The translations under genes and the position numbers were made by a program. A DNA stretch of 64,000 nucleotides, from positions 7,038,389 to 7,102,388 of the forward strand of contig CM121343.1 in assembly GCA_051530055.1 (NCBI GenBank), given 5' to 3'. Source of the stretch: Neoechinorhynchus agilis (taxonomy: Eukaryota; Animalia; Acanthocephala). The notes under the pieces were generated by a model. It saw only the letters and a program-made list of their open reading frames with translations, did no database searches and was not told the DNA's origin. Shown here in pieces: positions 4,727 through 63,700 of this stretch (positions are counted from its first letter, which is position 1; each line of letters begins with the position of its first letter).

Positions 4727-6139
4727 ACGGATAAGACCGGAACTCATCAACATTAGAATATGATTGCGTATCAAGAATAAATTATTTGTCTGAAAAGGTT
4801 AAAGCACATTTGAGACCACAAGTGATTTAATTTTATGTCGGTTCCAACATAGCAAAAGATAATTCGAGAATACACAGCCGGTAGTTTTTCCGTCAAGCAC
4901 ATTCACTCAGTCCGCTTTTTTTGGTGCTCACATTTTGCTGACAGGTAACGCGATTAAGCTGTGGGAATATGTGAGTTTATCGTTTGCGAAAACCTATTAC
5001 ATAATGATGAGAGTGATACAAAGAAGTTTCTTAGATAATTTCACAAACTGCTTTGACGTTCTTTGGATTTTTTGTGAGCTCAGTATTCATTAGACGACCA
5101 GTTCCGTTCGCCCATTGGCCACAAATATCAAAAAAATTAGTTGATTTTCGATTAGGTAGCAGTAAAGGTTCAATAGATTTTCAAAGAATAAGCTAGTAAA
5201 TATCGAAGCCTCCACGTGATAAATGTGAGCATTATCCGTTTACATGCCCTCTCACAAATATGACAGACTCGCGGCGGATTCATCGATATGTCCGGATTGT
5301 AATGTCGTTCTAGAATTATATAAGCTTGCCGAAAAATCATTTTCCGATTTCCCTAATAACTTGCAATTTACTAAAATATGGAAACGTACGACGCAATTTA
5401 TATAAGAATTGAATATGGATCCCCATCATGAATGTGTTGTAAGTTAAATGAAATACTATTAGTTTTTAGAAGATCATACAAATCTTTTCATTGCTCTATT
5501 TCCCTAAGGCATATTATTTTAATAATGAGTGTTGGAATGCCCTAGGTTTTTTTAGTGTGTCGATTTTTAACGAGTTCCACGTTGATGTTAATAATGGCCG
5601 AAAATGATGATGATAGCCACTATCTATTATTACCTAACATTTCATTATTCTTATTTTTTGTTCTCTTAAATATCCTGTCCTAGAAAATGTACATGAACTG
5701 GCTTTTTTTTTCATTACTGATGATAATTGTGTTAATGTTTACTTGTTTGGCGCACTGTGTGTTTTAGTGAGTGGTTGAGGTAGCAAATCTAATCTTTTCC
5801 TTGGAGAATTTCCCTGATGATAGCTATTCGGGGAGCACCGCCAGTAACGGAATGTAGTCGTCGCTGTGATAACGAAAGGATATCATTCAAGGTCATAGAT
5901 AACTGCATTAAAAAGGAAGACCCCTCCGTAAAAAGACAAGTATGTGTCAGATCTTTTTAACATAAGCAACGAGAATCATACTTTTTCGCCGGGTTTGACT
6001 CCCAGTGCGCCCTGCTGGCAGCGACGCTATAAGAAGTCCCGATAGAAATTATCTTTTCACTCTCATAACTTGAATGAAGCGCTTACTGCTCTTATTGATT
6101 TCGATTTCATCGAATCATTCGTCATAGAATTTATCTACA

Positions 6140-8590: not shown

Positions 8591-9036
8591 ACGACCTATT
8601 GTCGAAATATCGGACTAAATTCCTTCAATTTTTGCACGGGGTAAGGGCAAGTATGAAACAAAAGCCGATTAAAAGTTCTTAAGAAGATTTTTCAGCCACG
8701 GCTGTCTCAGGTCCATTCGTTTGTTACATAACACTTACTCCAATTCGAAAAATCGTGCCTCTCCATTTTTGTAGCACGTAACATCTTACCAGACTACACT
8801 GAGTCACTCTCTTTACAATTACCTTTACCACATATTTGAGAAGTATTCAAACGCCCTCTAGCGCTAGACGATTCATCGTAGTGTTAAGAAAACGTGTAGA
8901 ATCTTCTCGACCCCAAAAAACTATATACAAAGGCTCCTAAGTAATGAACGCAGACAAGAGAATCAACTGTCATGACAGCAGCAATGAGATTGAAAATGAT
9001 GTTATGTACATTAGGATTCCAGGTAGAAACTTAAAG

Positions 9037-12000
9037 ATGTCAGTGTTGAACTTGCTAAGATATGGAGAGAACGGGGTTGATGAAAATGGTAAATTCGCTT
9101 GGACGATGGATTCACCGCCTTCGTCTAACTATGGAGGACAGAACAAATTCGTTTGGATTGCCCATAATAGTGAAGGATTCGTAAAAGCCTTATTGCTCGA
9201 AGAAAACGACGAGTTATTAACCGTGGAGGTTTGTGGTTCAAACGAAAAAATTAAAATATCTCGAGATGAATGCCAAAAAGCAAATCCAGCTAAATTCTCA
9301 AAGGTTGAAGATATGGCTGAACTTACCTGCTTGAATGAAGCATCAGTCCTACACAATCTAAAGGAACGATACTTCAGTGGCCTTTTTTACACTTATTCTG
9401 GATTATTCTGCGTCGTTGTGAATCCTTACAAGAAAACGCACATTTACTCGGATATCATTATGAAGTTTTACAAAGGAAAGCGATTAACGGATGCTCCACC
9501 TCATATATTTGCAGTAACCGATGCAGCTTACAGGTCAATGCTTCAGGGTAAGTACGATTTTTCCATCACAAATAAAAATTAAATTAATAATAAAAATCGA
9601 TTTTAGATAGGGAGGATCAATCCATTCTATGCACGTAAGGTTGCCTTTTTTTATACCTGTCCTATTAAAATAAATGTGATTTAGTGGCGAGTCAGGAGCA
9701 GGAAAAACCGAAAATACAAAAAAGATTATCCAATATCTTGCCTATGTTGCTGCAGCTCCTAAAAAAGTCGCATCTAATCGTCTCGGTGCATCTGTAATAC
9801 AAAAGTATTTTCTCACGTAAACCTATTAAATTATTTAGGCTGTACAACTCACAAGAACTCTAAATGGCCGAATCGATACTGTGAGCATTTTAAAATTGCA
9901 AAAACAATATTCAAATGGGAATTTTAGGCCGAACTTGAGCTACAATTACTTCAAGCTAACCCAATACTTGAATCATTTGGGAACGCAAAAACCGTCAAAA
10001 ATGATAATTCATCAAGATTTGTACTATTTATTAATCTAATAACGTCGTTCGCATCTTAATTATAGGGTAAATTTATTAGAATTAATTTCGATCACGTTGG
10101 ATACATATCGGGAGCTTCTATTGAAACCTGTTTGTATGGCGAAAAATCTATTATTGACTAAAAGGATTTTAGACTTGTTGGAAAAGTCAAGAACTGTAAG
10201 GCAAGCAAAAGACGAAAGGAGTTTCCACATATTTTATCAACTTTTAAACGGATGTGACGATAAACTGTCAAGTATTTCTCTCTATGTGTTTTTCCTTAGA
10301 AAATACCTTTTTAAAATAGCCGAACTTCTATTGAAAGACGTAGATTCGTATACTTGTTTGTCAAATGGTTACATAGACTTGACTGACACCAATGATTCCG
10401 AAGAGTTTAAGCAAACCTTAGAAGCCATGCGGATTATGAACATGGGCGAAGAGCTCAATTGTAAGTACTGAACGAACTTCCGTTTCTTCTCACGGATTTA
10501 AAACAACAGCAATTTTAAAGACATTGTCAGCTATTTTATTGATGGGTAATATGACATTCATGCAAGATCGCAGTTCGGAACAGGCTACACTGCCCGATGA
10601 TACCAGTATGGCCGTTTAAATAATTTTCGAATTCGTGAATTGAGATTTTTAGTTGCACAGAAATTATCACATTTGCTCGGGCTAAACGTGACCGATTTAA
10701 CAAGAGCGTTTCTACGACCCAAATTAAAAGTCGGGCGGGACTACGTCCATAGAGCTCAAAATATTAACCAGGTAAATGAAATTGAATGGACGAAAGCGTC
10801 AAACATTTATAAACATTAAATAGGCTCAATTTGCAGTTGAAGCCATATCAAAGGCTATATATCAGCGCCTTTTCCGATGGATTGTCAACAAGATAAATAA
10901 ATCCTTGGATAGATCAACAGAGTCCGTCTCAACTTTTATCGGTATTCTCGACATGGCTGGTTTTGAGATATTTCAAGTGAGTAATGCGTTCCAGATTTGC
11001 TCATCCTGACAAATGAATGTTCAGATAAATTCCTTTGAGCAATTATGCATAAATTACACGAATGAAAAATTACAGCAGCTATTCAATCACACAATGTTCA
11101 TTCTTGAACAAGAAGAGTATGCAAGAGAAAAGATAGATTGGCGCTTCGTTGATTTCGGATTAGACCTACAACCCACAATCGATCTAATAGAAAAGGTGGG
11201 TGCGTTCTAAACACCATATAATAAAAACGGTTTAACGCAGCAAATGGGAGTAATGTCATTGCTCGATGAAGAATGCTGGTTTCCACGAGCAACCGATAAA
11301 ACTTATGTCGATAAGCTGATCTCAGCTCATGGCACCCATCCCAAATTTCTTAAACCCACGGTTAAAACAAGTCATGACTTTTCAATCGTTCATTATGCAG
11401 GAAGGGTAAGTATTAACGTTCACCTAGAATTCAATTTACCATTCTCACTTTTCTTAATTATTAAATAGGTAAATTATTGTGCAGATCAGTGGTTGTTGAA
11501 GAATAAAGATCCTTTAAATGACAACGTTGTAGCGCTTCTACAATCATCTAATGAACCTTTTGTTAGAGAAATTTGGAAAGACGGTATTATATGTGGAATA
11601 TTTCGGGCAATGACTAATATGCCATATAGCTGAGATAGTTAGCTTATCTACGGTAGATGATCTCGGGGAAGGAAATCTATCAGGTGTTTTTCATATACTC
11701 TAGACATAATCTCATACTTCAAAAATAGTATCAAGTTTAAGTTTAAAAGCAAATATCAAGAAAGGAATGTTCAGAACTGTTGGACAAACATATAAGGAAC
11801 AACTTTCGCAACTCATGAACACGCTCCAAACTACAAGTCCCAATTTTGTAAGATGCATAATCCCAAACCAAACAAAACAAGTAACTTATATTTCTTTTTT
11901 TAAGTAACCTGTAACTAACCAAGCATGTTCTAGCCAGGAAAAATAAACTCTATTCTAGTATTAGAACAATTAAGATGCAATGGGGTTCTTGAAGGAATTA

Positions 12001-15000
12001 GAATTTGCCGACATGGATTCCCGAATCGAATAAGATTTCAGGAATTTAGACAAAGGTAGTAAGGGAATAATTGTTTAAATTTCGACAACTTTATCAAGTA
12101 CGTTAGATACGAGATATTATGTTCTAGTGTTATCCCAAAAGGATTTACGGACGGTAAAATGGCTTGCAAGCGAATGGTGTGTACTCGTAAGGAAACGATA
12201 AATAATTTTATCCTTTCAATTTTAGTTAGAAGAGCTAGATCTAGATGACAACCTATTCAGAATTGGCATGAGCAAGATATTTTTCCGAGCCGGCGTTCTG
12301 GCACACTTGGAAGAAGAGCGTGACAGAAAAATTAGCGAAATCATAATCCAATTGCAAACATTAGCCAGAGGCGCTTTATCCCGGAGGAGATATATGAAGA
12401 GGCTGCAGCAAGTTACTGCAATTCATGTCATACAAAGAAACGGGAGAGTCCTTCTAAAAATTCGTAACTGGCAGTGGTGGCGACTTCTATCGAAAGTTAA
12501 ACCAATTTTACCTGTAACGAGAATCGATGATGAAATAAGAGAAAAGGAGAAAGAGCTGTCTTGTGCGACGCAAGCACTTGAACAGTTTCAGCATCAGCTC
12601 GCTGATGCGGAAACTAGACTAGATGATTTAATTGCTGAAAAAAGCAATTTAGTTGAGCAGCTAAACCAGGAACGAGAACTAAATAACGATCTTGAGGAGA
12701 GTAGAAACAGACTGCAACAGCGAAAAATGGAATTAGAAAACCTAATTGAGGATTTGGAAGTAAGGGTAGAGGAAGAGAGTAACAAGGCTCAAGGATGGGT
12801 TGATGAGAAAGTTGGGTTTGAAAAGAATTTAAGGGAACTGACAAATTCACTTGGAGTCGAAGAAAAGCGAAGGCAGAAGCTTGAACTTGAATTAATTTCT
12901 AAAAACGATCAAATTCAAACAGATTTGCAAAAGTTTCAAGAACAAGAGGAAAAAATGATAAAATTATCTAGGGACAAGGACGCAATTGCAAGAAATTTAA
13001 AAGAGTTAGAAGCAGATTATAAAAACGAGAAGAACCGTTGTAAGGATATGGAAAAGAACCGATTAAATGCCGAAGATATGAATAACGAATTAACTGCTAA
13101 ACTGAATGGATTGGTTCAAGCAAAGAATGCTACCGAGAAGACATTACACGGTCTAGAATCCCGGAAAGATGAACTCGAGCACGAAATCAAGGAGAGAAAC
13201 AACGAGATTTTAAGCTTAAAAGATCAGCTTAGCAGCAAGTCTCTTGACCTCAAAGCCGTCTATGCTAAGCTTGAGAATGAAAGCGACGAAAAGAGCAATG
13301 CTGTAAGGGAGTTAAGAGAAGCGCGCATGCAATTGTCAGATTTAAAAGACGAAATTTCTGCTGGAAAAGATTTTCAGCGTAAGATTGAGCATCAAATGAA
13401 GGATTTGGCAGAAGAGAATGAGGCACTGCGGAACGAAATCGCCAATCACTCTGATGTGAATGCTTTGATGCAGGAGCAGAATAGGAAGAGAGATAAGGAA
13501 TTATCTGATTTAAAACAGAGACTGTTTTCGGAGCAAAATGATCACCAGAAAACTATTCAAGAATTGAAAATCAAGCACGCCAATGAATCTAAGGCACTTA
13601 ATGACCACCTTGATAACTATAAAAAAGAATGCCAAGCTATTGGAAGAGATAAAGCATCAATGGAGGTGGAAGTGAGACAAATAAATGATCAACTAAGAGA
13701 CGCTAAACGTCTACGAAGTGAACTCGAAACCAAGCTAAAGCAGTCAGAGAATCGAGTTTCGGACCAGATGGATCAGTTGAATAAGCTACAGGACGAAAAA
13801 TTTGTGATGTCTAATTTGTTAAAACAGGCATCTCAGGGGTCAGAATCGCAAAAGTCACAAATCGCACAGTTGGAAGCAAGAATTGCGGAGCTGGAAGCTG
13901 CGCTGAAACTCGCCCGGCTTGATGTTCTTGACCTACAGCAAAACTTGGAGCACGAGAGGAAGGATAAATGCATTCTGCAAGTAAAATTGAAACAGTACGA
14001 GAATGAGGTAGCTAGTTTGATGGATCAATTGGACGAAAAAAATGACGAGCTGACCGATGCGGAATCAAGAATTAATTCAATTATTTCTAGTGTATGTATT
14101 ATATGCACAGCGAAAATTTTAAATTGAATTTTAGTTCAACGAAGAGAAGGAGCAAATGAAAATAAACCATGAGAACGAACTCGACGAGCTCAAGAGGATT
14201 TTCAACCGGGAAAAGGACTCGCTCCTTGCAGATTTAGATCAAGTCAAAACAGCTTTGGCTAAATTGAGTGAAAGCAAAAAGAAGCTTAGAAATGAGGCAG
14301 GCTAAAACGCAGTTCTCCAATTTTTTTTATTGCGTCCAATTTACTTTAGTTCGGTGATGTATGTGTTGAACGTGATCGATACAAGAATACATTGGCTGGA
14401 TTAGAGAAAGCCCAACGAAATATCGATCGTAAATTGAACGAAGAAAAAGCCCTTCAAGAAAAGCTGCATGAAGAATTGGAAGCCAGTGAAAGCAATAACC
14501 GGGATAAAGAAACAAAGCTCATAAATGCTCAATACGAGCTGGCAAACAAGGACGATATGCTGAAAGATGCAAACAATCGATTGAAAGAACTTAAATCAGA
14601 GTTAGATGTCGCATTGCATGGAAAGGACGATGTTGGTCGCAATGCGTGCGAGCTTGAACGGGCAAATCGTATGCTCGAGCATGCTTTGGACGATCAAAAG
14701 AAGCGAGTGATTGAGCTTGAAGATGAGTTGTCATTGTCTGATACAGCGAGATTGCGGTGTGAGGTGAATATGAACGCATTGAAGCAAAGCATGGAGAAAC
14801 AAATACAGGAATGTATTAATGCAGGCGATGAGAAAAATAGAGCACTATCTAAGCAGCTTCGCGATGTTGAAACGGAATTGGACGAAGAAAAGAAGGCTCG
14901 AGGGACGTTAGTGGGTACAAATAAGAAGTTGAGAGACGAGATTCGAGATGCAAATGCCAGGATTGATGACTACAATCGCCAGAGAAACGATGACCAACGT

Positions 15001-16128
15001 CAGATAAGGAAGCTAACGGTCACAATTAAAGAGATAACGAAACAGTTTGAAGAAGCCAAATTAAATCAAGATCAGGCGTATACGGCAGGTAAGGATCTTG
15101 AACGAAGAATTTTAGGGTTGGAACAAATATTACACGAGACGCAAGTCGCTAAGGAAGATGTTGAAAAGCAATTTAGATTGTGTATGGCAGATTTGGCTGA
15201 AGTGCGGCAAGAGTTGGAAGACGCAAAAGACGGGTTTGACCGGAAATCATCTCTTAACGAAATAATGAAGTTAAAAGCACAGATCATGGAACTGGAAGAT
15301 GATCTGGCCGATGAGACAGCTGATCGAGATTTACTTACAGATCAAGTCAAAAAGCTTTCGACTAACTTGGAGCAACTTAACAGTGAACTAACAGACGAAC
15401 GAAACGCTCTATCAAAAGCTGAGAGCGCCCGGGCTACGCTCGAGAGGCAGAATAATGATCTTTATCAGCGATACTCTGAACTGGAACAGCAAGTTAAAAT
15501 TAAAGGAAAAGGAGCAGTAACAATGTTGGAATCTCGGATTACGGTCCTCGAGGAGCAACTGGATAACGAACAAAAGTAAGAACAGTTTCCCATAATCGTT
15601 TTGATGAGTTTCAATTGCAGGGAGAAACAAAAAGGTGCGAGACTTATCAGGTCATTAGAGAAAAAGCTTCGTGAATCCAATGTGCTAAACGATGAGAACA
15701 AAAAGGCCGTCAGCGAGTTTAAAGAGCAGATTGAAAAGACCAACGCAAAAATCAGGCATCTGAAGCGTCAAAGTGATGAACGTGACGAAGAGATATCAAA
15801 ACTGAGTAACCGATTGAGAAAGGCTCAACGAGAAAAAGAAGAAGCTAACGAGATGATAGCACTTCGTGATCAACGAATCGGTCACTTAGAATCGAGGTAA
15901 GCCAAGTCAATTTCTGATTTCCGGCTTTACTAACAATTGATGTTTTTTTTCAAAAATAGGGCTTACGTGCCGGTAATGAGGACTTTTAAACGGATTATCA
16001 GGACTTCTAATGATGCGGCATCCTATATTGAGGATGACATTGATGAGGACTTAAGTGAGGATGATCGCACACAAGCGACGAGTATTAGCAGTGCTGCAAC
16101 AACTGATCGAGCAAAAAGCAAATCATAA
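9037..16128 (+). CDS. MYH9: Non-muscle (smooth-type) myosin II heavy chain, multi-exon
   Basis: SH3-like N-domain, [19 protein letters not shown]-loop [40 protein letters not shown] region WQWWRL and a long coiled-coil tail. Many short introns; start codon uncertain (8944 or 9037). Co-orthologous to MYH9/10/11. Confidence 0.96.
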
Positions 16129-18829: not shown

Positions 18830-20420
18830 GAACAATTCAATTTTCAAACGTATTTCGGGAGACTTTTTTTATTGCGAATTATAATAATTTATTTGATAAT
18901 TTTCGGCCTTCTTGCTCTAATTTTTTTTCGAAAACAATGGACTGAAGAAGGCCTTCTTCAAATAAAAATAAATCAATTATTTGATAATTCCCTATAAAAA
19001 AAGTTAAAATGGTGAACATCCTTACAATATTTCAGGAGACTTTTTATAGCGAATTATAATAATTTATTTGATAAATTTCTGCCTTCTTGCTCTAATTTTT
19101 CTTCGAAAACAATGGACTGAAGAAGGCCTTCTTCAAATAAAAATAAATCAATTATTTGATAATTCCCTATAAAAAAAGTTAAAATGGTGAGCATCTTTAC
19201 AATATTTCAGGAGACTTTTTATAGCGAATTATAATAATTTATTTGATAATTTTCGGCCTTCTTGCTCTAATTTTTCTTCGAAAACAATGGACTGAAGAAG
19301 GCCTTCTTCAAATAAAAATAAATCAATTATTTGATAATTCCCTATAAAAAAAGTTAAAATGGTGAGCATCTTTACAATATTTCAGGAGACTTTTTATAGC
19401 GAATTATAATAATTTATTTGATAATTTTCGGCCTTCTTGCTCTAATTTTTCTTCGAAAACAATGGACTGAAGAAGGCCTTCTTCAAATAAAAATAAATCA
19501 ATTATTTGATAATTCCCTATAAAAAAAGTTAAAATGGTGAGCATCTTTACAATATTTCAGGAGACTTTTTATAGCGAATTATAATAATTTATTTGATAAT
19601 TTTCGGCCTTCTTGCTCTAATTTTTCTTCGAAAACAATGGACTGAAGAAGGCCTTCTTCAAATAAAAATAAATCAATTATTTGATAATTCCCTATAAAAA
19701 AAGTTAAAATGGTGAGCATCTTTACAATATTTCAGGAGACTTTTTATAGCGAATTATAATAATTTATTTGATAATTTTCGGCCTTCTTGCTCTAATTTTT
19801 CTTCGAAAACAATGGACTGAAGAAGGCCTTCTTCAAATAAAAATAAATCAATTATTTGATAATTCCCTATAAAAAAAGTTAAAATGGTGAACGTCTTTAC
19901 AATTTTTCAGGAGACTTTTTTATAGCGAATTATAATAATTTATTTGATAATTTTCGGCCTTCTTGCTCGAATTTTTCTTCGAAAACAATGGACTGAAGAA
20001 GGCCTACCACAACCACGAAGGCCTTCTTCAAATAAAAATAAATCAATTATTTGATAATTCCCTATAAAAAAAGTTAAAATGATGAACATCTTTACAATAT
20101 TTCGGGAGACTTTTTTATAGCGAATTATAATAATTTATTTGATAATTTTCGGCCTTCTTGCTCGAATTTTTCTTCGAAAACAATGGACTGAAGAAGGCCT
20201 ACGCGAAGGCCTTCTTCAAATAAAAATAAATCAATTATTTGATAATTCCCTATAAAAATAGTTTAGAATGATGAGCATCTTTATGAGAAATCATTACATT
20301 TACTTCTTTTTTTATAGCGAATTATCAAATAATTGATTTATTTGAAGAAGGCCTACGCGAAGGCCTTCTTCAAATAAAAATAAACCCAATTATTTGATAA
20401 TTCGCCATAAAAAAGTTAAT
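18830..20420. repeat. Satellite D, 175 bp monomer, about 9 copies, each with an 18-bp perfect palindrome
   Basis: GGAGACTTTT anchor at 19035, 19210, 19385, 19560, 19735 and 19910 (175-bp period); TGAAGAAGGCCTTCTTCA palindrome in each unit. Confidence 0.96.
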
Positions 20421-36935: not shown

Positions 36936-36944
36936 CTTTAGAGT

Positions 36945-37938
36945 TGATGACGGATCCGGAGTGGATGGCGGATCCGGTGTGGATGGGCGGATCCGGTGTG
37001 GATGAAGGATCCGAAGTGGATGATGGATCCGGAGTGGATCGACGGATCCGGAGTGGATGATGGATCCGAAGTGGATGATGGATCCGGAGTGGATGATGGA
37101 TCCGGTGTGGATGATGGATCCGGTGTGGATGATGGATCCGGAGTGGATGACGGATCCAGTGAGGATGACGGATCCGGTGTGGATGACGGATCCGGTGTGG
37201 ATGACGGATCCGGAGTGGATGATGGATCCGGAGTGGATGATGGATCCGGAGTGGATGATGGATCCGGTGTGGATGATGGATCCGGAGTGGATCACGGATC
37301 CAGTGAGGATGACGGATCCGGAGTGGATGATGGATCCAATGTGGATGACGGATCCGGTGTGGATGGACGGATCCGGAGTGGATGATGGATCCGGAGTGGA
37401 TGACGGATCCAGTGAGGATGATGGATCCGGAGTGGATGATGGATCCGGTGTGGATGGACGGATCCGGCGTGGATGACGGATCCGGTGAGGATCGACGTAT
37501 CCGGAGTGGATGGCGGATCCGGAGTGGATGACGGATCCGGCGTGGATGACGGATCCGGTGAGGATCGACGGATCCGGAGTGGATGACGGATCCGGCGTGG
37601 ATGACGGATCCGGTGAGGATCGACGGATCCGGAGTGGATGGCGGATCCGGAGTGGATGAAGGATCGTGTGTGGATGAAGGATCCGAAGTGGATGATGGAT
37701 CCGGAGTGGATGATGGATCCGGAGTGGATGATGGATCCGGAGTGGATGACGGATCAAATGAGGATGACGGATCCTTAGTGGATGATGGATCCAGTGAGGA
37801 TGACGGATCCGGAGTGGATGATGGATCCGGTGTGGATGAAAGATCCGGTGAGGATGACGGATCCTTAGTGGATGATGGATCCAGTGAGGATGACGGATCC
37901 GGAGTGGATGATGGATCCGGTGTGGATGGATGGATCCG
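36945..37938. repeat. 18-bp minisatellite (GGATCCGGAGTGGATGAT), about 55 copies
   Basis: Direct tandem repetition with GGT/GGA/AGT and GAT/GAC variants. Confidence 0.97.
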
Positions 37939-39354
37939 TCGTCGGCTGCACTCTTCGGAGACTTGCAGCTAAAATAATATGTAAGAGAGTTTCGCCGAAA
38001 TTGGATGGGGTGTTGAGGCCATTCCAGCTAGGATGTTGCACACCTTGTGGTGCCGAAGCCATTACTCACGCACTCCGCGACCATCTTGAAGTAGCAAAGG
38101 CTCCTTTGGTCGTCTTAAAGTTAGATTTTAAAACCGCCTTCAACTCCTTCCGCAGAGAGAAAATGTTAGATGCCATCAAAGATTTTATCCCTGAAAGCTA
38201 CCCCTGCTTTTTATCAGCCTACTCCAATAAAACCCCTCTCCTATACAACAATCAGATTATTTGGTCCCAATGTGGTGTCCAGCAGGGTGACCCCCTTGGT
38301 CCCATTGGATTCGCGTGTGCAATCAATGAATTGGCACAATCACCAATTTCTCCTTTCAACGGCTGGTACCTGGATGACGCCACACTCAGCGGTGATCCCC
38401 AGGTTGTTTTAGGGGACTTACAAGCTATTATAAGCGAAGCAGAAAACTTGGGCCTCGAACTGAATTTCGAAAAATGCGAAATCCTTTTTCAGGGATTCGA
38501 TGACAGTTCACGTTCGACGATCATCGCAGTTTTTCGGCAAGTTGCTCCCGGAGTGCGCGAGGTTACAAAATGCGAATTTAATCTCCTCGGAAGCCCCATT
38601 TTCGCCGACATGTGAGCTGTCGGCGCACGAAGCCTTCTTCCTTTTAAAGAATTGCCTATACATCCCCAAATTGATGTATAAGCTGAGAGCTGCTCCGTGT
38701 TTCGAGGAGAAAAGAGTTTTATCGGATCTCGACGGGGCTTTACGCTCTTTTTTAAAGACAATTTTAAATGTAAACATTACGGATACGGGCTGACGGCAGG
38801 CTACGTTCCCAACCTCTTTTAGCGGCCTCGGCATCCGCGCAGTGTCGGATTTAGCCCTTCCAGCGTTCCTCGCCCCTTACCGAGCCAGCAAAACGTACGC
38901 GGACTTTCCAACATGAGACAAAACTCCCAACATTATTTGGACGGTTTGTCGATCTGGCAATCCCAAACAGAGATCCCGCACCTTCCGGAAAATGACCACA
39001 AGCAGTCGGCCTGGGACCTTCCCCTCATAAAGAAGATTCACAAATCCTTTAACGATCTTCTCGACGAGGTTCCCCAAGTTCGTCTTGCGGCGTACTCTAC
39101 AAAGGAATCGGGAGCCTGGCTAAATGCTCTCCCCGCCCCGACAATCGGAACTCTTCTAGAGGATTCCACGTTAAGGGTCGTAGTTTCTTTAAGATTGGCC
39201 AGGATATTTGTATCTCGCATCGCTGTCGCTGCGGCTCTATAGTTGAAGCCAATGGCAGACACGGCATCCGTTGTAAAATGTCCAGAGGGAGGTTTCCAAA
39301 ACACTCAGAATTGAACTCAATTTTGAGTAGAGCCCTAGATTCCGTCCACGAGCC
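37939..39354 (+). mobile_element. 5'- and 3'-truncated CRE-clade retrotransposon (RT + start of REL domain), pseudogenised
   Basis: VGCTLRRLAAK, QLGC..GAEA, LDFKTAFNS, GVQQGDPLGP, WYLDD, ESGAWLNALP; internal stops and frameshifts. Confidence 0.9.
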
Positions 39355-40559: not shown

Positions 40560-42640
40560 GATCCAAGGGTATGCCAGGGCCCAGAGGTACCGAGAACCCA
40601 AGGGTAATTCTGGGTCTCCAAATTCAATTCCCCCAAGCGCAATACCATTAAAATTTATCTCCTCAAACGCCTCCGACATTTAGGAATCCCTTCACCCGAT
40701 CTCTCCAAATTTTACTTCAGCTTTATGTTACCCGTCCTCACCTACGGTTACCCCGTCTTTTGCAACTCACCCAAATCACAAATCCATCGCCTCTACAGCT
40801 GACTTTCCTTCTCTCGCCGAATACTTTTATAAAATTTTCATAAAACAATCCAAACGCCTCTAAACGCTACGACCACAATTTTTACAACATTTTATTCCCA
40901 TTTTCACACGAGCACAACACTCGTAATCCTAATTCCTTTCATCCTCCTCTACCTCCGCTCCTTTTTCCACGCTGCCCAATATTCTCGGATATCATTACCT
41001 CAAATGAATCTGAGGAAATACCCAACCTCATAAATTCTCCTGCAAACAATATCCGTCAATCTACACCCGAACGGACATCCTCCGACCGGACAATTCCACC
41101 CGAAAGGACATCCGCCGACCAGACAATTCCACCCGAAAGGACAATTCCACCCGAACGGACATCCTCCGACCGGACAATTCCACCCGAACGGACATCCTCC
41201 GACCGGACAATTCCACCCGAAAGGACATCCGCCGACCGGATATTTTCACCCGAACGGACAATTCCACCCGAAAGGACAATTCCACCCGAACGGACATCCT
41301 CCGACCGGACAATTCCACCAGAACGGACATCCTCCGACCGGACAATTCCACCCGAAAGGACATCCGCCGACCGGATATTTTCACCCGAAAAACAATTCCA
41401 CCCGAAAGGACAATTCCACCCGAACGGACATCCTCCGACCGGACAATTCCACCCGAACGGACATCCTCCGACCGGATTCACCCGAAAAACAATTCCACCC
41501 GAAAGGACAATTCCACCCGAACGGACATCCTCCGACCGGACAATTCCACCCGAAGGACATCCCGACCGGACAATTCCACCCGAAAGGAAAGGACATCCGC
41601 CGACCGAACAATTCCACCGGAACGGACAATTCCACCCGAACGGACATCCTCCGACCGGACAATTCCACCCGAACGGGCATCCTCCGACCGGACAATTCCA
41701 CCCGAAAGGACATCCGCCGACCGGGTATTTTCACCCGAAAAAACAATTCCACCCGAAAGGACAATTCCACCCGAACGGACATCCTCCGACCGGACAATTC
41801 CACCCGAACGGGCATCCTCCGACCGGACAATTCCACCCGAAAGGACATCCGCCGACCGGGTATTTTCACCCGAAAAAACAATTCCACCCGAAAGGACAAT
41901 TCCACCCGAACGGACATCCTCCGACCGGGTATTTTCCGAAAAAACAATTCCACCCGAAAGGACAATTCCACCCGAACGGACATCCTCCGACCGGACAATT
42001 CCACCCGAAAGGACATCCGCCGACCGGACAATTCCACCCGAGAAAGGACATCCGCCGACCGAACAATTCCACCGGAACGGACAATTCCACCCGAACGGAC
42101 ATCCTCCGACCGGACAATTCCACCCGAACGGGCATCCTCCGACCGGACAATTCCACCCGAAAGGACATCCGCCGACCGGGTATTTTCACCCGAAAAAACA
42201 ATTCCACCCGAAAGGACAATTCCACCCGAACGGACATCCTCCGACCGGACAATTCCACCCGAACGGGCATCCTCCGACCGGACAATTCCACCCGAAAGGA
42301 CATCCGCCGACCGGGTATTTTCACCCGAAAAAACAATTCCACCCGAAAGGACAATTCCACCCGAACGGACATCCTCCGACCGGACAATTCCACCCGAACG
42401 GACATCCTCCGACCGGACAATTCCACCCGAAAGGACATCCTCCGACCGGACAATTCCACCCGAAAGGAAAGGACATCCGCCGACCGAACAATTCCACCGG
42501 AACGGACAATTCCGCCCGAATGGAGAATCCCCCGACCGGGCAATTCCACCGGAACGGATCCGAATTTTTTGAGCAAATCTTAACTCGGTTGTTCATGAGT
42601 ACCCAAATGAACATGGATCTGATTTCTTAAACACAAAAAC
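40560..42640 (+). mobile_element. APE-type (CR1/L2/Jockey-like) LINE 3' fragment carrying an expanded minisatellite in its 3'UTR
   Basis: About 40640-41075 is nearly identical to the reverse complement of about 54410-54855 (RT C-terminus LPVLTYGYPVF plus 3'UTR). Confidence 0.85.
41063..42560. repeat. 33-bp minisatellite CACCCGAACGGACATCCTCCGACCGGACAATTC with higher-order structure
   Basis: Tandem 16-17 bp subunits forming 33-bp units and 135-bp blocks (41721/41856, 42176/42311). Confidence 0.97.
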
Positions 42641-42953: not shown

Positions 42954-43358
42954 ATGCTGAGTGCTATTTTCTGTAGACTCGTTTACATCGGTTTTGGCAT
43001 TCTGATTCCTTCGTTCACCACTCTTCGGTTCATCGAAAAGAACCGGCTTTCTTCGAAGGGATCCGCAATCACTGCTGATGACCGGGTGAAGATTGAAGAT
43101 CTTTTATCGTATTGGACACTGTTCGGTGTGTTCAGTATGGCCCAGCTTATTGGAGACATGCTTATTTGGTGGATTCCATTCTATAACCAAATAAAACTAT
43201 TGGCAACTTGCGTATTGGCTACTTGCGGAACTCAACTCCATTTTTCAGTTCATTTAATTTGCTCGGTCGTATCGCCTATCCTCCATTACTCGGAACCAGT
43301 TGCTCGAAGGTTGGAAGATATGGTTGGAATCAATGGACTGATCGCTATCGACCAATAA
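42954..43358 (+). CDS. REEP: Receptor expression-enhancing protein (TB2/DP1/HVA22 family, REEP1-4-like)
   Basis: MLSAIFCRLV..FGILIP, YWTLFGVF and WIPFYNQIKL match the REEP1-4 N-terminal domain. Confidence 0.8.
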   Translation: MLSAIFCRLVYIGFGILIPSFTTLRFIEKNRLSSKGSAITADDRVKIEDLLSYWTLFGVFSMAQLIGDMLIWWIPFYNQIKLLATCVLATCGTQLHFSVHLICSVVSPILHYSEPVARRLEDMVGINGLIAIDQ

Positions 43359-51220: not shown

Positions 51221-52252
51221 TCACACTGCATCCATGCAGTCACTGATGGAAGCTTCATGAACGGGAAAGTACAACCTATCTATGAGCTCATTAAGTTGTT
51301 CATTCACCCCTATATCTTCGATGATGAATTTGATTTCATCACGAGTTGCTTCACATTCATTCTTGGTATATTCCAAGGAATGAAAATCTTCCATTAGTTG
51401 AACACAATAGCTTTTAAGTTCAACATCATTCGTGTGCTGTTTGAGTATATTAACTATCCTTGTATCCCTTTCTTTGGTATTGATAGCATGGATAACAGGA
51501 AGAGTAAATTTTCCTTCAGTTATACTCTCAGCGAAATCTTTACCGGATTCATGAAACCCACAACTTAAATTTAGATAATCCGCTCTGTATTGTAGGAATA
51601 TCGCGAGTTCCCGAATAAGTTGGTCTAAGCTTTCAACAATATGTCGGCTAAAGTATTTCATAAGTTCTATTGGAATTGTTAACAGCGATCCGATTTTATT
51701 GCAAATCATAATTCGGTATTCATCTTCCGTTGGGCAAACGCAGGACTCTCTCCACCATATTTCGATGCCTTGCCCTTGATAATGCTTCAACATTTGTTCT
51801 AAATAAGGAAATTTAACGCACACAAATTGGAAGCTGACTTAAACACCGTACCTGTGAACATTTCCGTCGACCCTGGGCATTTCAATTCATTTATGATGGC
51901 AAGGGCCTTAAATAAGGCGACGTTACTTGCATTTATGGTCAAAGGGGAACTATAGATTTTATTGGCCACAGGAAATCCGCACCTAAGAGTAGACGAATCC
52001 TGAATATCATCAATTAGCATTACTGAGCAGCAAATTAGATCAAATGCTTTTGCTATCGATTCGATTATCACATCGGGAACTTCGAACCAGCTATTAAAGG
52101 CATCAATATATTTACGTCTATTCTCAGTTCCGGGTAATGTTAGTGCATAATCGATGGGTTCGTGAAGAAACTGTTGCTAATAACATTTAATTTAAAGTTC
52201 ATTCGAATGCCCTTACCGAATATTCTTCAGACGGCTCGTCTCTGTCTGACAT
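51221..52252 (-). CDS. GGPS1: Geranylgeranyl diphosphate synthase-like protein (divergent motifs)
   Basis: Three exons: LHEP..LPG, AFNSW..VP, LIDDIQDSS.LRCG.P, QGQGIEIWWR..CPTEDEY, TEGKFTLPVIHAI; colinear with animal GGPS1. Confidence 0.9.
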
Positions 52253-52572: not shown

Positions 52573-53362
52573 TCAGTCCATGTTAATCTGTATATCCTTT
52601 TCAACTTGTACGATATGAGAAATCTGCTGATTATCAATACATGCTTTGACAAACTCTTCTTCGCTGATTGAGTTATTACCATCTGCATCCATCACCTTCA
52701 GTAGCTCCTGCGAAATTTCCCTAGCATCATCGTCCGGTAAATGTTCAAAGAAGAAGGACTTTACAATGTTAAAAAGCTCTTCCCCATCAATATCACCATT
52801 TCCGTCAAGATCAGCGGTATTAAATAAAAGCTTTAATGGCGGTACTCCTAATTACTTCTGGTAACTGGAAATACTGCCATTAAGAGTACCGTTTTAGTCT
52901 GTCCTCAGGAGTTCCTTTCAAGGCAATATCCATCTCAGAAATGAACGTATTTATGTCCACTAGGCGTTTTTCGTTGCTTTTATACGAATTGAGCAATAGG
53001 TGAATGAAGTGACGTTCACCGCTGCTATTCGCAACCAGTTTATTTAGTCTTGTAAGTCCTCCTTTTTTAAGGCGATGATCTTGGAAACAATTAGAATAGG
53101 CAGCGATAAGCTGCATCAATTCTTTAATATCGAATCTGTGTTGAACCTTTACCTCACTGAGCGGAATAATTTTTGCTGGCTTTGATTCATATTCCTCTGT
53201 TGGCCGGTCAGCGAAGCTCTTGAACTTGAAAGTGCGATTACCCATTGTTAGAAAAACGTGAGTGTTTGTGTTGGCTTTAACGTTAGTTGAAACCGTACCG
53301 ATATATGTAGCTAGTGTTTTCGAGCTCCGAGCTTGCCGTAAATTTACATTGGAGAAAAACAA
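52573..53362 (-). CDS. EF-hand calcium sensor (calcineurin B/calaxin/NCS-like)
   Basis: KGTPEDRLK, then canonical loops DLDGNGDIDGEE and DADGNNSISEEE in a second exon; 5' end uncertain. Confidence 0.72.
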
Positions 53363-57031: not shown

Positions 57032-60000
57032 TAAACAATCACCACCGACCGCGAAGAAGAGGCATCGCTCTCCCCGCAGTGGTCACGACCACACTCGCTA
57101 CGTTTCCTCTTTGGATCGCGAGACCAATGTTTTGGCGTAGGAAGGCACCGGCTCTTGTGTTTCCAGTCTTGGCTTGGCGTCCACTTGATAACTCGTTCGT
57201 AAATCCAAGTGCCGAGCTATCGAGCGCACCAAGAGTCTCCACTCCAAAGGGTACAAAAACGTGAGACCTACATAATTCTCTATATCTCGCCACCTTTCGG
57301 TCCTCCGCGGCAGTAGCCGCTTCCCCTGGGGACTGCTCCACAAACCTCCTGTTACTTGCCGCGAACGTGTCCACACACGTGGCGTCCCAGAGAAGACATT
57401 TGCCTTCTCGCCATGAGAATACGGTGAGACCATCCGGACAACGACCATCTAGCCTGCACAGGTTGCTTGGCTCTAAAATGTTTGGGATGTTCACCGTATT
57501 TAGGGCACGCGAAATTACATCGTTCAATTCAGCATGCCGTGAGAAACAACCCCCTGATTTGTTGCAAACAAGACCGTGTCTACCCAGTGGATCCACGATC
57601 ATTCCACACTTGCGACAATGTTCGACACAAATCGGTAGACATAATCTGAGGGACACTCCGATCCGAACTGCTTCATCTACGAGGAGTGTTCCCACGGATG
57701 CAATGGGTAGGGCCTCTAACCATGCTCCCGATTCTCTTGTAGAGACTGCCAGCAATCTAGCCGGTCGACCTCGTCGCGAGAGCTTGAAATTAGAGAACTA
57801 TGAGCTCGAGCGACTAAAGATTTATCCCAGATGGGCTGCTTTAGGCCCTTCTCCGACCATTCCTGGACTGCTACTGGTCCCAATATACGTTTTACCAGAT
57901 CCTGACTCCCTTCGAATGATCCTAAAAACGCGGGCAACGACACGTCTACTGTTTTTCGATTACCCAAGGCACCGGACGATACAGGCAATAAAGCTTGTCG
58001 TCAGGCCTCGTTTGATAGCTGGATATTTAAATGTGCCCGAGACACGCATTCACAATGTCATCGAGCTTCTTTAACTTATCGACGTGCTTGAAGAACGAAG
58101 CCGTACGGAGTTTACAAGGGAGTTTCGGGATGAAGAGGGTATTCTTGATCAGGAATAGATCCTCGTGTGACGAAAGTTCCTGGACTCTATCGCACAGCAT
58201 CGTGATGTTCGGGAGTAGATGGTCGATTTCATTTTCCACGTTGGAATTAAAAACGCAGCTCCCTAGAAGACTCAGCCGGTCTAGAGTGATCAATTCTAAA
58301 CCGCGTGCCAGATTTCTAAAACCTTTGACGATTTCGCTCTGCGCTGACTCTTCTTCGATGTTCATTACCAACAGTTCGCATTTCCCTGCATTAAGCTCAA
58401 AGCCCAATCTCGCAGTCTCCCTTACGAGTGTCTCCAGATCGCGCAGTACTACGGAGGGATCACCTCCGGGCGTGGCGTCATCCAGGTACCAAGCGTTAAA
58501 GCTGGACTGGAGAGAGTGCGCTATTGAATTCACTGCAAGGGAGAAAGCGATTGAACCGAGAGGGTCTCCCTGCTGTACTCCTATTTCAGACCAAATTAGG
58601 TGGTCATTGAAGAGCAAATGAGTCTGGATCCCGTATGCGTTGCGAAAATAAGGAAAAGCTTCTGATGTGTGACTTTTGAGTGCCTCAAACAGAGCGGTAC
58701 GGTGAGTGGAATTGAAGGCATTTGTAAAGTCGCACTTCAAAATCACACACGGCGTTGAACTATTTGTGATGAACTGGCGGAGTGCGTGGATAATGGCCTC
58801 GTACCCGTATGGTGTGCAGCATCCCAGTTGGACTGGGCGAAGTTGCTGCCCAATCCCTTCTGCAATACGCTTGCAAAGGATTTTACCTGCGAGCCGACGT
58901 AGAGCAGAGCCAACGGCGATAAAACGAATCCCACCAGTCTTTTTGTTCAAAGCGCACAAAGATGCGCCAAAAAATAACTCAATTGCCCGCGGGTGTAAAT
59001 TTTCCTCGATGAAAAGGTCGACTAGTCGACAAAGATGGGTAGCAAGGGAGTTGCCTGCATCTCCAACTGAGAACGACATCATATCCTTTAGGTGCTGAGG
59101 ACGAAGCCCATCGAGGCCATGGCCAGACCCATTCGCGAAGGAGGATATACCCATTCTCAGTTCAACTGTCAAAGTGGAGTGTCTTTGAGGGACGGAACAT
59201 GTTGAAATTTCTGTTTGGGTTGAACTTTGCGGATGCTTCAACTTGAAACTCTGAAGTGTGGAGGGCGAATCACTTGCAAATGTATCAGAGAATGACAAAA
59301 TACGGACTGCTCCCAGAACATCTCCATCAGCGAGTTTTGAAGATACACGCTCAGCAAGCGGTCTCTTAGATGTTCGATGGCAGTTAGTTTCATTCGCACG
59401 TTGTTTGGGATCTTCCTTTGCTAAACGACGAATGCTCAAGAAACTTTCCTCGAAGGATACAAACTCCTCCGAACTGTCGTCAGCAGAATGTACTACTCTG
59501 GGGAAAGCAAAGAGCCGTGTCCAAGAGGACTGAATTTTGCTCGAGGCAGTCCAGCAGAAGTCTGGTGAATTCTTTAGCTACTAGATGTCGTGCGTCCTTT
59601 GGGATCCGTTTCAGAATGTTCCTATGAAGAACACGCTCGAGATCAGCAGCGGAAGGAAGACTGCCGGCGTCATCGGGAAGCGTCGACGGATTTTCTGGTG
59701 TTGCCGGTTGAAGCGGTAGCGGGATTTGACCAGATCCCCCACAACGTGATTTGACGAGCCCATAAATGCGGAAAACCCCTAATTTCGTGATTGAAAAAGA
59801 GTCTAAACAAACGGGGCATATACCTATGGAGAGGCCTGGTGTCCCGGTAGCGTTGGGCGTTTTCTTAGTCTTTTCACTTGGCTCGTTTTGTGCGGGCAAG
59901 TTTCCGTCTTCATATTGTGGTCTAGCATCCAGGTTCCGAACGAAGCGAGGGGACGGCATCGGTGTAGTCGGTGAGTTTCAGTAACTCGTTCAAAGCACTT

Positions 60001-61197: not shown

Positions 61198-61578
61198 ATG
61201 GCTAACGGTGATTTGTCTCATGACGAAATGGCTTGTATGTGCGCTTGTCTAATTCTGGTTGATGAAGATTCAAAGATCACGGCTGGTCGTATTTCTTCGG
61301 TCTTAAAGAGTGCAAATGTGAATGTTGAGCCGTTTTGGCCTAATTTGTTCGCTCGAGCGTTGGGTACCATGGAACCGGACCAACTCAAAAGATCAATAAT
61401 TTCTTCTCTAGTTTCAAGCGGAACGTCAGCTCAGTCGCTTTCGAAAACGGCCCACGGCCATCCGAATACGAGTGCTGGTGTGGTTGAACAAACTGCAGCA
61501 CCGGTTGCAGTCGATGTTGAACCTGATTCCGATTCTAGTGATGCAGATTTGGACATGGGTTTCTCTATATTTGATTAA
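61198..61578 (+). CDS. RPLP1: 60S acidic ribosomal protein P1
   Basis: EMACM.ACLIL.DE, ANVNVEPFWPNLFARAL, acidic tail ending DMGFSIFD. Confidence 0.92.
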   Translation: MANGDLSHDEMACMCACLILVDEDSKITAGRISSVLKSANVNVEPFWPNLFARALGTMEPDQLKRSIISSLVSSGTSAQSLSKTAHGHPNTSAGVVEQTAAPVAVDVEPDSDSSDADLDMGFSIFD

Positions 61579-61645
61579 AAATGTTTTTTTCATTCTACTG
61601 AAATGTTTTTGCACTCTATTTGGCTAAAAAAGTATAATTTTTTAG

Positions 61646-61990
61646 ATGACTGAAGTAATTGAGACCGAGATCCGGACTTATATGAATGCTCTCTTTGTTA
61701 TTCATGCTGCTCACAAAGAAATCAATCCACAAAACCTTGCTAAAGTTTTGACTGCGGCGGGAGTAGCGACCAATGTGGCTCTAGTGGAAGCCTACGCTCG
61801 TGCATTCAATTCGGCGGATATTGAAGCGATGACTGTGCATACTCCACAACAAACCTCCCAGGCTCCAGTTTTTACTGGTGCCGATGTGAAACAAGTTGAT
61901 GTTCCTCAAGAAGCTCCTAAAGAAGCGGAAACTAAAAATGATTCTGATGATGACGACGATGATATTGGATTCGGATTGTTCGATGATTAA
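61646..61990 (+). CDS. Divergent acidic ribosomal stalk P protein (P1/P2 family)
   Basis: YMNALFVIH..KEINPQNL.KVL.AAGV N-domain, Ala/Pro/Gln linker, DDDDIGFGLFDD tail. Confidence 0.85.
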   Translation: MTEVIETEIRTYMNALFVIHAAHKEINPQNLAKVLTAAGVATNVALVEAYARAFNSADIEAMTVHTPQQTSQAPVFTGADVKQVDVPQEAPKEAETKNDSDDDDDDIGFGLFDD

Positions 61991-62289: not shown

Positions 62290-63700
62290 ACGTTTATTGT
62301 TAAAAAATACAAAGAATAGGAGCACCCATGTACCTTTGGATCCTCATAAGCATGCTCCAAGTCGGGGATGTCCGTTCGTGTGGTTATATTTGGTCGGGGC
62401 AAAACAAAGCTGAAGTAAAATTTGTAGAGATCGGGTGAAGAGATTCCTAAATGTCAGAGACGTTTGAGGAGATAAGTTTTAAAGGTGTTGTGCTTGAGGG
62501 GAAAGGGTGATGTGCGAGTCCCATTTCAAGTTTGATTGAAATTGGATACCCAGAATCCTTAGGGAAGTTATTCGTAGGATGTCATTTAGAAGCTCAGGGA
62601 ATGATGTGCGGTTCCAGGAGAGAGGGGATCATTTCGAAGCATTTAGAGAAATTCAGGTGGAGTTTGTGATTGGTGCCGAAATCTTTTGTGTGATTTCGTT
62701 AGAGGTTAGGGCGAGGTGGTGAATGGGTGATGAGGGTGATATCGTCGGCGTACGGGAGGAATTTAGAGTGAGAGGAGAGAGGTTTAAAGTCGTTTAGCAA
62801 AATATTAAAGAAAAGTGGTGACAGCACAGCACCTTGAGGTACGCCTTTGGTGCGGGATAGACAGATTGAGGAGGTAGAAGAGCAGTGAATGTATTGTTTG
62901 CGATTGTGAAGATAAAATTCGAGCCCGCGGATCTCCCACAAGTTGAGACCAAAATCGGAGCAGGAATGAATGGTCCACTGAGTCGAAATCTTTAGATAAA
63001 TCACGTTGAATGAGACGGGTGACGTAGGAGAGATTATGGTCGAGGTTGCGTAGGAGCGTGTCATAAATGCAAAGTAGGACATCGGCTGCAGAAAATTTGG
63101 GCCGGAAGCCAAATTGTAGGGGCGATAACGTTTCGTGGAGAAGTGAAAGAAGGCGAGATTTAAAACATTTTTCGATGATTTTTGAAAGACCGGGTGGAAT
63201 GGAAATTGGACGGAATGATTCAGCCGAAACGGGATGCCCTTTTTTTGGAACGAGTAAAACTTTGGCAGTTTTGAGGCATGAGGGGTTGATGCCATATAAA
63301 AAGCTGCTATTTATAATGAGGGTGAGAGGGTCGATAAGTTCGGAGATGTTGTAGCCAAGAGCATAGTTTGGAATTTCGGATTGAGAGGACGAAATTCGAG
63401 ATGCCCGAACGAATTTTAGAGGAAAAGAAGTTTTTTCGGCCAACAAGCATTTTGTTAGATAGTACGGGGATAGTCAGGGGATTGATTGAGAAAGGCAGTA
63501 GATTATTAATTTTGAAGGCGTTTAAAGATGGGGGTTATCCATGGAGGGTCGCCCTTGGAGATCCTAATGAATTTCTTGAGAATTGCCGAAGTTAGGGATT
63601 TTTTTATGATTGAGGTTAGGGACGACATTGCCAAGGAAGGGTCATTTGTGTTGTCAGAGTAGAATGTGCGAATATTAGAGTTGAACAATTTTAGAAAATG
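62290..63700 (-). mobile_element. APE-type LINE remnant with RT core
   Basis: KTAKVLLVPKK, FRPISI..LSKIIE, QFGFR, DLSKDFDSVDH, GVPQGAVLSP..FNI, YADD; frameshifted; 3' stem-loop at about 62315. Confidence 0.9.

Follow-up and report, generated by a model that had tools for sequence, protein, structure and literature searches.

Type III geranylgeranyl diphosphate synthases (GGPPSs) are the closest described relatives of the protein reported here, and the ligand sites of the human enzyme (GGPS1) have been described from crystal structures. In the human GGPPS crystal with isopentenyl diphosphate (IPP; 9CSL), the IPP diphosphate is bound by salt bridges from K25, R28, and R74 and by a hydrogen bond from H57, R73 reaches the diphosphate via a water molecule, and T152 and Q185 contact the isoprenyl tail (PMC11734896). 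D188 is a ligand of the third Mg ion (PMC10762340). Here, we describe a GGPPS-like gene (locus ACOME3_010184) carried by the minus strand of a 64-kb stretch of contig CM121343.1 (positions 7,038,389 to 7,102,388; hereafter the window) from Neoechinorhynchus agilis, in which most of the IPP ligands are substituted, whereas nearly all ligands of the allylic diphosphate and Mg are kept. N. agilis is an acanthocephalan, or thorny-headed worm, and a gut parasite of mullets.

Proteins with the fold of isoprenyl diphosphate synthases (IDSs) are not always condensing enzymes. Plant geranyl diphosphate synthase small subunits, animal PDSS2, and fission-yeast DLP1 do not condense and act via a catalytic partner. 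Such non-catalytic subunits have lost both Asp-rich motifs, and the plant small subunits carry CxxxC motifs. The animal terpene-synthase (TPS) literature that we found concerns arthropods and sponges, and none was found on the isoprenoid synthases of acanthocephalans. The characterised insect TPSs keep approximately 10% of the IPP-contact residues, compared with 98% in IDSs, and the recombinant IDS2 protein of Phyllotreta striolata showed neither IDS nor TPS activity (PMC10108439).

Homology, ligand residues, and descent of the GGPPS-like protein

The product of the N. agilis gene matched human GGPS1 over 291 residues with 40% identity and one gap (BLASTP, E = 1e-79). The top PDB match was human GGPPS 2Q80 (phmmer, E = 1.6e-68), and the polyprenyl-synthase domain PF00348 was detected. 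The AlphaFold2 (AF2) model had a pLDDT of 90.8 and a pTM of 0.89, and its best Foldseek matches were human GGPPS (TM 0.88-0.96, root-mean-square deviation approximately 1.5 Å). Judged from these matches, the homology to type III GGPPS is clear, and the predicted fold is that of an all-helical isoprenoid synthase. The next-best full-length matches were GGPPSs of bdelloid rotifers with 43-46% identity, consistent with the place of acanthocephalans in Syndermata. These rotifer proteins are closer to those of insects, echinoderms, and other animals, at 55-60% identity. The sequence-only reading, made before the origin of the DNA was considered, had set the gene in an insect context, which does not fit an acanthocephalan gene (KAL7669532.1, CM121343.1). 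Its statement that the frame is intact over three exons held, the spliced open reading frame (ORF) being open for 312 amino acids and both introns being GT..AG.

Residue equivalences were taken from alignments of 30 and then 302 family members and are given in human GGPS1 numbering. Compared with the human protein, the N. agilis protein carries K25T, H57C, N58C, S60V, L61M, R74C, H80N, G84S, Y94V, Y96L, H123Y, T152I, G154S, F156L, F184L, D188A, and D207S, together with E54D, Glu for Q26, Ser for A59, the loss of the K71 charge, and a new Arg at position 29. The unchanged residues are R28, D64/D65/D68 of the first Asp-rich motif (DDIQD), R73, K151, Q185, D189, N192, K202, E210, K212, and the Y246-C247 pair, and the GQG motif is unchanged as well. 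At the substituted positions from K25T to D207S and at the kept residues from R28 to Y246-C247, the rotifer GGPPSs carry the canonical residue, save for T152C. The motif changes that had been read from the letters alone were all found (PGKQVR to PGTENR, LRRG to LRCG, KTG to KIG, DDYAN to ADYLN, and EDL to ESI, with DDIQD intact). One more, LHNAS to LICCS, was right in that the region is altered, but its pairing was one residue off; the gap-free pairing sets MLHNASLL against LICCSVML and gives Cys, not Ile, at H57, Cys at N58, Ser at A59, and Val at S60.

The four ligands of the IPP diphosphate, K25/R28/H57/R74, read T/R/C/C in N. agilis, and thus only one of four is kept. One of the two contacts of the isoprenyl tail is lost (T152I) and the other, Q185, is kept. 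The earlier claim that the substitutions fall on IPP-binding residues is therefore supported, since K25, H57, R74, and T152 all bind IPP in the human crystal structure (9CSL, PMC11734896). The allylic-diphosphate clamps R73, K151, K202, and K212 are all kept. The ligand of the third Mg is lost (D188A), and the second Asp-rich motif (SARM), which reads ADYLN, departs from the DDxxN/D pattern by its first Asp only. D207 was aligned to D261 of farnesyl diphosphate synthase (FPPS), within IPP-binding motif (IBM) 5, and we presume, on the basis of FPPS structures, that it lies in the second shell of the third-Mg site. In all, 4 of the 6 IPP ligands are changed, compared with 1 of the 9 that bind the allylic diphosphate or Mg (one-sided Fisher test, P = 0.047).

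Arranged by motif, the changes are K25T in IBM-1; E54D, H57C, and L61M in IBM-2; R74C in IBM-3; T152I and F156L in IBM-4; and the tail contact F184L in the SARM. The residues gained in the IPP site (Thr, Cys, Cys, and Ile) are neither aromatic nor acidic. The lining of the pocket is also altered, by S60V, Y94V, Y96L, H123Y, T152I, F156L, and F184L; the aromatic residues Y94, Y96, F156, and F184 are gone, and H123Y is the sole aromatic gain.

We then asked how unusual this pattern is within the family. The published regular expressions for the IBMs (PMC10108439) were too strict, as canonical GGPPSs of rotifers, echinoderms, and yeast fail several of them, and the scoring was therefore restricted to the IPP-contact residues. 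N. agilis keeps the equivalents of 35% of 17 such positions, compared with a family median of 88%, and this is the sixth lowest value of 261. Among 265 full-length members, the loss pattern was otherwise confined to a class with beetle and lepidopteran 'terpene synthase-like' GGPPS paralogues; the other low scorers with recoverable names came from Tenebrio and Zophobas ('terpene synthase-like' GGPPS paralogues) and from the butterfly Aricia (a GGPPS-like protein). Of 300 family members, 290 have Asp at position 188, and Ala was found there solely in N. agilis. Furthermore, 57 family members are at least as diverged as the N. agilis protein (at most 50% identity to the consensus), and 41 of them, including fungal and protist GGPPSs and other highly diverged family representatives, have 0-1 changes at 16 ligand residues, compared with 6 in N. 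agilis. Since most of these diverged peers keep their ligands, the contact score is low, and the other low scorers are TPS-like, fast evolution alone was rejected as the cause of the changes.

Neutral decay, which the sequence-only reading had named, together with absent expression, among the outcomes that would speak against it, was found unlikely in view of the open frame, the confident fold, and a simulation of neutral substitution on the coding sequence. In this simulation, which comprised substitutions only and ignored indels, at least 6 of 16 key residues were changed with no stop codon arising in at most 0.35% of the runs, whatever the divergence. In addition, 67 of 96 columns conserved in at least 80% of the family (approximately 70%) are kept, versus an overall identity of 42%. 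Decay of the whole gene is thus an unlikely source of the changes.

In a neighbour-joining (NJ) tree, the terminal branch of the N. agilis protein was 0.71 substitutions per site, 3-10 times longer than the 0.06-0.22 of canonical animal GGPPSs. The phylogeny left the protein unplaced, in a group with long beetle TPS-like branches at 45% bootstrap, and this grouping is probably due to long-branch attraction. Intron 2 has the position and phase of an intron (approximately 33-94, phase 1) in a rotifer-like GGPPS gene (L002, 1-705), and a bdelloid-type GGPPS model (P0017) has an 18-residue in-frame insertion at the same site that resembles a read-through intron. We favour vertical descent because the rotifer GGPPSs are the best full-length matches and share this intron position and phase through the rotifer-like gene. 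A retrocopy and horizontal transfer were rejected on account of the two introns and the shared intron position.

Proposed reading and its rivals

We propose, with a probability of approximately 0.5, that the gene is a descendant of GGPS1 kept by selection, whose product would no longer elongate with IPP and would still bind Mg and an allylic prenyl diphosphate. According to this proposal, a GGPS1-type gene was vertically inherited along a very long branch, on which selection would have preserved the open frame and the isoprenoid-synthase fold, together with the first Asp-rich motif and the basic residues that clamp the allylic diphosphate (R73, K151, K202, and K212). The homoallylic (IPP) site would have been dismantled by K25T, H57C, R74C, and T152I, and the third-Mg site would have been weakened, with D188A taking away a ligand and D207S affecting the presumed second-shell residue. 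The protein may still bind Mg and a prenyl diphosphate, either farnesyl diphosphate (FPP) or geranylgeranyl diphosphate (GGPP). We infer that it does not condense this substrate with IPP at a useful rate and that it is not an ordinary GGPP synthase.

Several points weigh against this proposal. The contrast between the IPP and the allylic residues is marginal, and the P value rises to 0.09 when D207 is counted as an allylic/Mg residue. The human D188Y protein keeps approximately one quarter of the wild-type activity, and D188A alone should not be fatal to catalysis (PMC8016774). With R28 kept and a new Arg at position 29, one turn of helix away from the missing K25, the IPP site may have been remodelled. 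The comparisons cover one acanthocephalan sequence, and its expression is implied by an RNA-seq-guided BRAKER model (PMC12690905); an exact-sequence look-up for independent transcript or genomic contigs gave no match. Finally, a need of the worm for GGPP raises the chance that the protein still makes it, and no other GGPPS was found in the limited searches.

As to what a protein of this kind would do, a non-elongating binder or a regulatory subunit is possible, although the odds are against it, and it is slightly preferred over an IPP-independent catalyst such as a TPS, which is unlikely. This lean is due to the damage at the third-Mg site, which would hamper ionisation, the non-aromatic gains in the IPP site, and the loss of pocket aromatics. 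Of the two functions that had been suggested from the sequence alone, the non-catalytic subunit is hence at least as likely as the TPS. The protein does not fit the described non-catalytic IDS subunits, in which neither Asp motif survives, and no catalytic partner subunit was found in the protein searches (the best 120 of 4378 matches for the rotifer query).

The number of GGPPS genes bears on these functions. By tblastn, no other GGPPS-like sequence was present within the window. A word-based search with the N. agilis protein returned 43 matches with no other acanthocephalan among them, and it was incomplete, as it missed human GGPS1 also. An exhaustive HMMER search of 1.84 billion representatives gave nothing above 46% identity, and a canonical rotifer GGPPS query returned none from N. 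agilis among the best 120 of 4378 matches. Gene duplicates are rare in this genome, with 1.8% duplicated BUSCOs (PMC12690905). From the searches, the annotated proteins are unlikely to include a recent paralogue, and the term paralogue, which had been applied to this gene, is not borne out by the window or by the protein searches (for the rotifer query, the best 120 of 4378). Given the intron common to the rotifer-like gene and the rotifer best matches, the gene may instead be the orthologue of canonical GGPPS. A canonical GGPS1 elsewhere, for which the sequence-only reading had advised a search, did not turn up in the protein searches, which cannot settle the copy number, and an older canonical copy elsewhere in the N. 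agilis genome is possible.

Among the rivals of the non-elongating descendant, the one that survives best is that the protein is the sole and still-working GGPP synthase, with an IPP site rebuilt from R28, the new R29, R73, and K202 and a low flux that a shrunken demand for GGPP would make tolerable. We consider this, which the sequence-only reading had treated solely as a refuting outcome, somewhat unlikely. Rab proteins are prenylated with GGPP as the lipid donor, and GGPP is regarded as indispensable in eukaryotes. In N. agilis, the BUSCOs for phosphomevalonate kinase (PMVK), diphosphomevalonate decarboxylase (MVD), Rab geranylgeranyltransferase (RabGGTase) beta, and the alpha subunit shared by farnesyltransferase (FTase) and geranylgeranyltransferase I (GGTase-I) are Complete, and the four are Complete or Duplicated across Seison, N. 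agilis, and P. laevis (PMC12256650 Supplementary File 1, BUSCO_Syndermatan). In these three Pararotatoria, GGTase-I beta and UBIAD1 are scored as missing (PMC12256650). Since the mevalonate enzymes and RabGGTase beta are present, the worm should make IPP and still need GGPP for its Rab proteins. The two undetected proteins suggest a reduced use of GGPP in these parasites, by fewer consumers, and the lowered demand could have relaxed selection on the enzyme.

The open frame, the fold, and the survival of the first Asp motif and of the allylic clamps would also agree with a working enzyme, and the rarity of duplicates (1.8%) with a sole copy; moreover, the activity of human D188Y is down only about 4-fold (PMC8016774). 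That no second GGPPS was seen in the window, in the protein searches, or among the best 120 of 4378 rotifer-query matches points the same way, but these searches were word-limited or restricted to those best matches, so the missing copy is weak evidence. The residues themselves speak against it: of the four side chains that bind the IPP diphosphate directly, three have gone together, and the inspected members of the 265 set with at least three such losses also deviate at other ligand sites. Positive charge is lost around the site (K25, H57, K71, R74, and H80), and Q26 has become Glu. In rat and yeast FPPS, even conservative changes of the Arg-Arg pair reportedly cut the rate approximately 1000-fold.

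The next rival is an IDS-derived TPS, or another IPP-independent ionising enzyme, acting on geranyl diphosphate (GPP), FPP, or GGPP bound at the kept allylic site to give a hydrocarbon or an alcohol, and of an origin independent of that in insects, which we hold to be unlikely. Loss of the IPP motifs in a protein whose first Asp motif is intact has been published as a predictor of insect IDS-type TPSs, but the rule cannot tell TPSs from dead proteins, as P. striolata IDS2, with similar changes, showed neither activity (PMC10108439). With 35% of its IPP contacts kept, the N. agilis protein falls in the same class as the beetle and lepidopteran 'TPS-like' GGPPS paralogues, and its pocket lining is remodelled at the seven positions given above (S60V to F184L); however, the net result is a loss of aromatic residues, and Thr, Cys, and Ile were gained at sites where aromatic or acidic residues appear in the characterised TPSs of beetles and bugs. 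The residues assigned to the third Mg are hit by D188A and D207S, and class I ionisation depends on this ion as well. No canonical partner copy was seen in the limited searches, and no terpene product is known from acanthocephalans. The TPS signature described in the sequence-only reading thus stands as far as several IBMs are altered in the manner of the TPS-like class, and a TPS function is made less likely in that the third-Mg ligand is lost and no aromatic residue was gained in the IPP site.

It is improbable, more so than the foregoing rival, that the sole acanthocephalan GGPS1-type gene has turned into an IPP-independent enzyme, with GGPP coming from a promiscuous FPPS or from the host. 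Least probable is a functionless gene in relaxed or neutral decay in a parasite with a shrinking genome, for although the terminal branch is long (0.71 vs 0.06-0.22), catalytic residues are lost, and approximately 45% of metazoan BUSCOs are missing (PMC12690905), the gene has a 310-codon open frame with two canonical introns, a joint probability of at most 0.35% in the neutral simulation (indels ignored), a confident structure model (pLDDT 90.8), and an intact first Asp motif, allylic clamps, GQG motif, E210, K212, and Y246-C247 pair.

If the sole GGPPS-type gene cannot bind IPP, the parasite would obtain GGPP by salvage or from an FPPS making longer products, and this would expose a dependency in a fish-farm pest. 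If, on the other hand, the sole copy works, the textbook IPP site would be less essential than assumed. If a canonical copy exists, an IDS duplicate losing its IPP site would extend the insect model of new isoprenoid functions. To our knowledge, no earlier case of such a duplicate has been described in a non-arthropod animal, and we know of no IDS-derived TPS in animals outside the arthropods, of which N. agilis would provide the first.

Gene model and other features of the window

The coordinates are collected in Table 1. The acceptor of intron 1 is a NAGNAG, at which the AG 6 nt upstream adds Gln-Gln; the spliced open frame thus gives 312 amino acids and the NCBI model, using the second AG, gives 310, the products being otherwise identical. 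The annotated model, KAL7669532.1 ('hypothetical protein ACOME3_010184 [Neoechinorhynchus agilis]'; CM121343.1, a 7.8-Mb scaffold of GCA_051530055.1), differs from the translated gene solely by QQ at the alternative acceptor.

Table 1. Positions of the GGPPS-like gene, its key residues, and other features in the 64-kb window.
Feature	Position	Strand	Remarks
GGPPS-like gene	52252-51221	minus	three exons; locus ACOME3_010184
Exon 1	52217..52252	minus	ATG at 52252; translation MSDRDEPSEEYS; GT donor at 52216; matches N-terminus of NCBI model P0001
Intron 1	52171..52216	minus	GTAAGG...TTATTAG/CAACAG; 46 nt in NCBI model, 40 nt with alternative AG
NAGNAG acceptor of intron 1	52171-52176	minus	
Exon 2	51852..52170 (NCBI model) or 51852..52176	minus	holds degenerate IPP-binding region and intact first Asp-rich motif
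Thr (human K25)	52128-52126	minus	exon 2, alignment equivalence
Arg (human R28)	52119-52117	minus	exon 2, alignment equivalence
CC (human H57, N58)	52032-52027	minus	exon 2, alignment equivalence
DDIQD, first Asp-rich motif	52011-51997	minus	exon 2, intact
RC (human R73, R74)	51984-51979	minus	exon 2, alignment equivalence
Intron 2	51799..51851	minus	53 nt, GT..AG, phase 1 within Glu codon preceding QMLKHY
Exon 3	51221..51798	minus	runs through stop codon
KI (human K151, T152)	51697-51692	minus	exon 3, alignment equivalence
ADYLN, second Asp-rich motif (D188 to A)	51583-51569	minus	exon 3
Lys (human K202)	51541-51539	minus	exon 3, alignment equivalence
Ser (human D207)	51526-51524	minus	exon 3, alignment equivalence
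Lys (human K212)	51511-51509	minus	exon 3, alignment equivalence
YC (human Y246-C247)	51409-51404	minus	exon 3, alignment equivalence
Upstream neighbour	52573-53362	minus	ends approximately 320 bp before GGPPS-like ATG
Satellite-like tandem arrays	160-4727, 18851-20283, 36941-37938, 41064-42558		
Probable myosin heavy chain gene	8944-15579	plus	large ORFs
REEP-like gene	42954-43358	plus	Pfam TB2_DP1_HVA22; called in public contig
Acidic P-stalk protein gene	approximately 61198-61990	plus	Pfam Ribosomal_60s; two exons; called in public contig
Reverse-transcriptase-like ORF	57039-59959	minus	
Reverse-transcriptase-like ORF	37872-38615	plus	
Reverse-transcriptase-like ORF	62699-63446	minus	

The upstream neighbour lies on the same strand as the GGPPS-like gene. 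By eye, its last ORF holds an EF-hand-like loop (DADGNNSISEEEF), and an AATAAA follows the stop codon; its first large exon had no PDB match. The large ORFs on the plus strand begin, by eye, with a myosin-motor-like part followed by a long coiled-coil tail, and they are probably a myosin heavy chain gene. Among the tandem arrays, the repeat unit is 134-156 nt (13 copies at most), 175 nt, or 18 nt (55 copies) long, and one array is nested, with units of 18/33/135 nt; the 18-nt and nested arrays yield long spurious ORFs on both strands. The largest of the reverse-transcriptase-like ORFs had a weak match to R2-type non-long-terminal-repeat retrotransposon proteins (E = 0.002), and these ORFs are probably degraded retrotransposon copies.

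Two further sequences from outside the window were inspected. A rotifer-like fragment (P0101, on L002/L003; Logan SRR27500695 and SRR27500694) has KLGSLF, WWRE, and LMRLF, compared with KIGSLL, WWRE, and LMKYF in N. agilis, and it retains RDDYCN and EDLTEGK. It was considered as a trace of an old divergent paralogue lineage and rejected, as it groups with rotifers and not with N. agilis in the tree. On an ENA contig (ERZ26165376; L004), an ORF at 3052-5636 with a match to Pfam Terpene_syn_C_2 is followed, approximately 1 kb downstream, by the C-terminal exon of a rotifer-like GGPPS (P0043), and the two are probably separately called exons of one GGPPS gene.

Comparison with known systems

Compared with the type III GGPPSs (human, 2Q80 and 9CSL; bdelloid rotifer, P0002-P0009), the N. 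agilis protein has the same PF00348 domain and fold and a near-equal length, with one indel relative to the human enzyme. Its DDIQD motif is identical to that of the rotifer GGPPSs, and its intron position and phase match those of the rotifer-like gene. However, two defining features of these enzymes, the second Asp motif and the IPP ligands, are not retained, the differences being K25T, H57C, R74C, T152I, D188A, D207S, H80N, and G84S together with the pocket changes.

The insect IDS-derived TPSs and 'TPS-like' paralogues (the ocimene synthase of Heliconius and the predicted proteins of Tenebrio, Zophobas, Aricia, and Bicyclus) are derived from trans-IDSs, as is the N. agilis protein. Both have lost the basic residues of IBM-1, -2, and -3, have a changed IBM-4, and sit on long branches, and the first Asp motif usually survives. 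K25 and R28 are nevertheless retained in the two lepidopteran GGPPS-type TPSs that have been characterised, and these have insertions in IBM-5, whereas N. agilis has no insertion there. The IPP site of the characterised beetle and bug TPSs shows aromatic or acidic gains, in contrast to the Thr, Cys, and Ile of N. agilis, and in none of the insect TPS-like proteins does the second Asp motif begin with Ala. Moreover, the insect proteins sit beside a canonical copy, whereas none turned up for N. agilis in limited searches, and their hosts are arthropods, whereas N. agilis is a non-arthropod endoparasite.

The non-catalytic IDS subunits differ from the N. agilis protein, which keeps DDIQD and is short of only the first Asp in the second motif. 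A CxxxC motif is absent from the N. agilis protein, in which no Cys pair four positions apart was seen by eye. The FPPS-derived IDS2 of the beetle P. striolata is, like the N. agilis protein, substituted at the equivalents of H57 and R74 (IBM-2 and IBM-3), and for both proteins the function is not predictable from the sequence.

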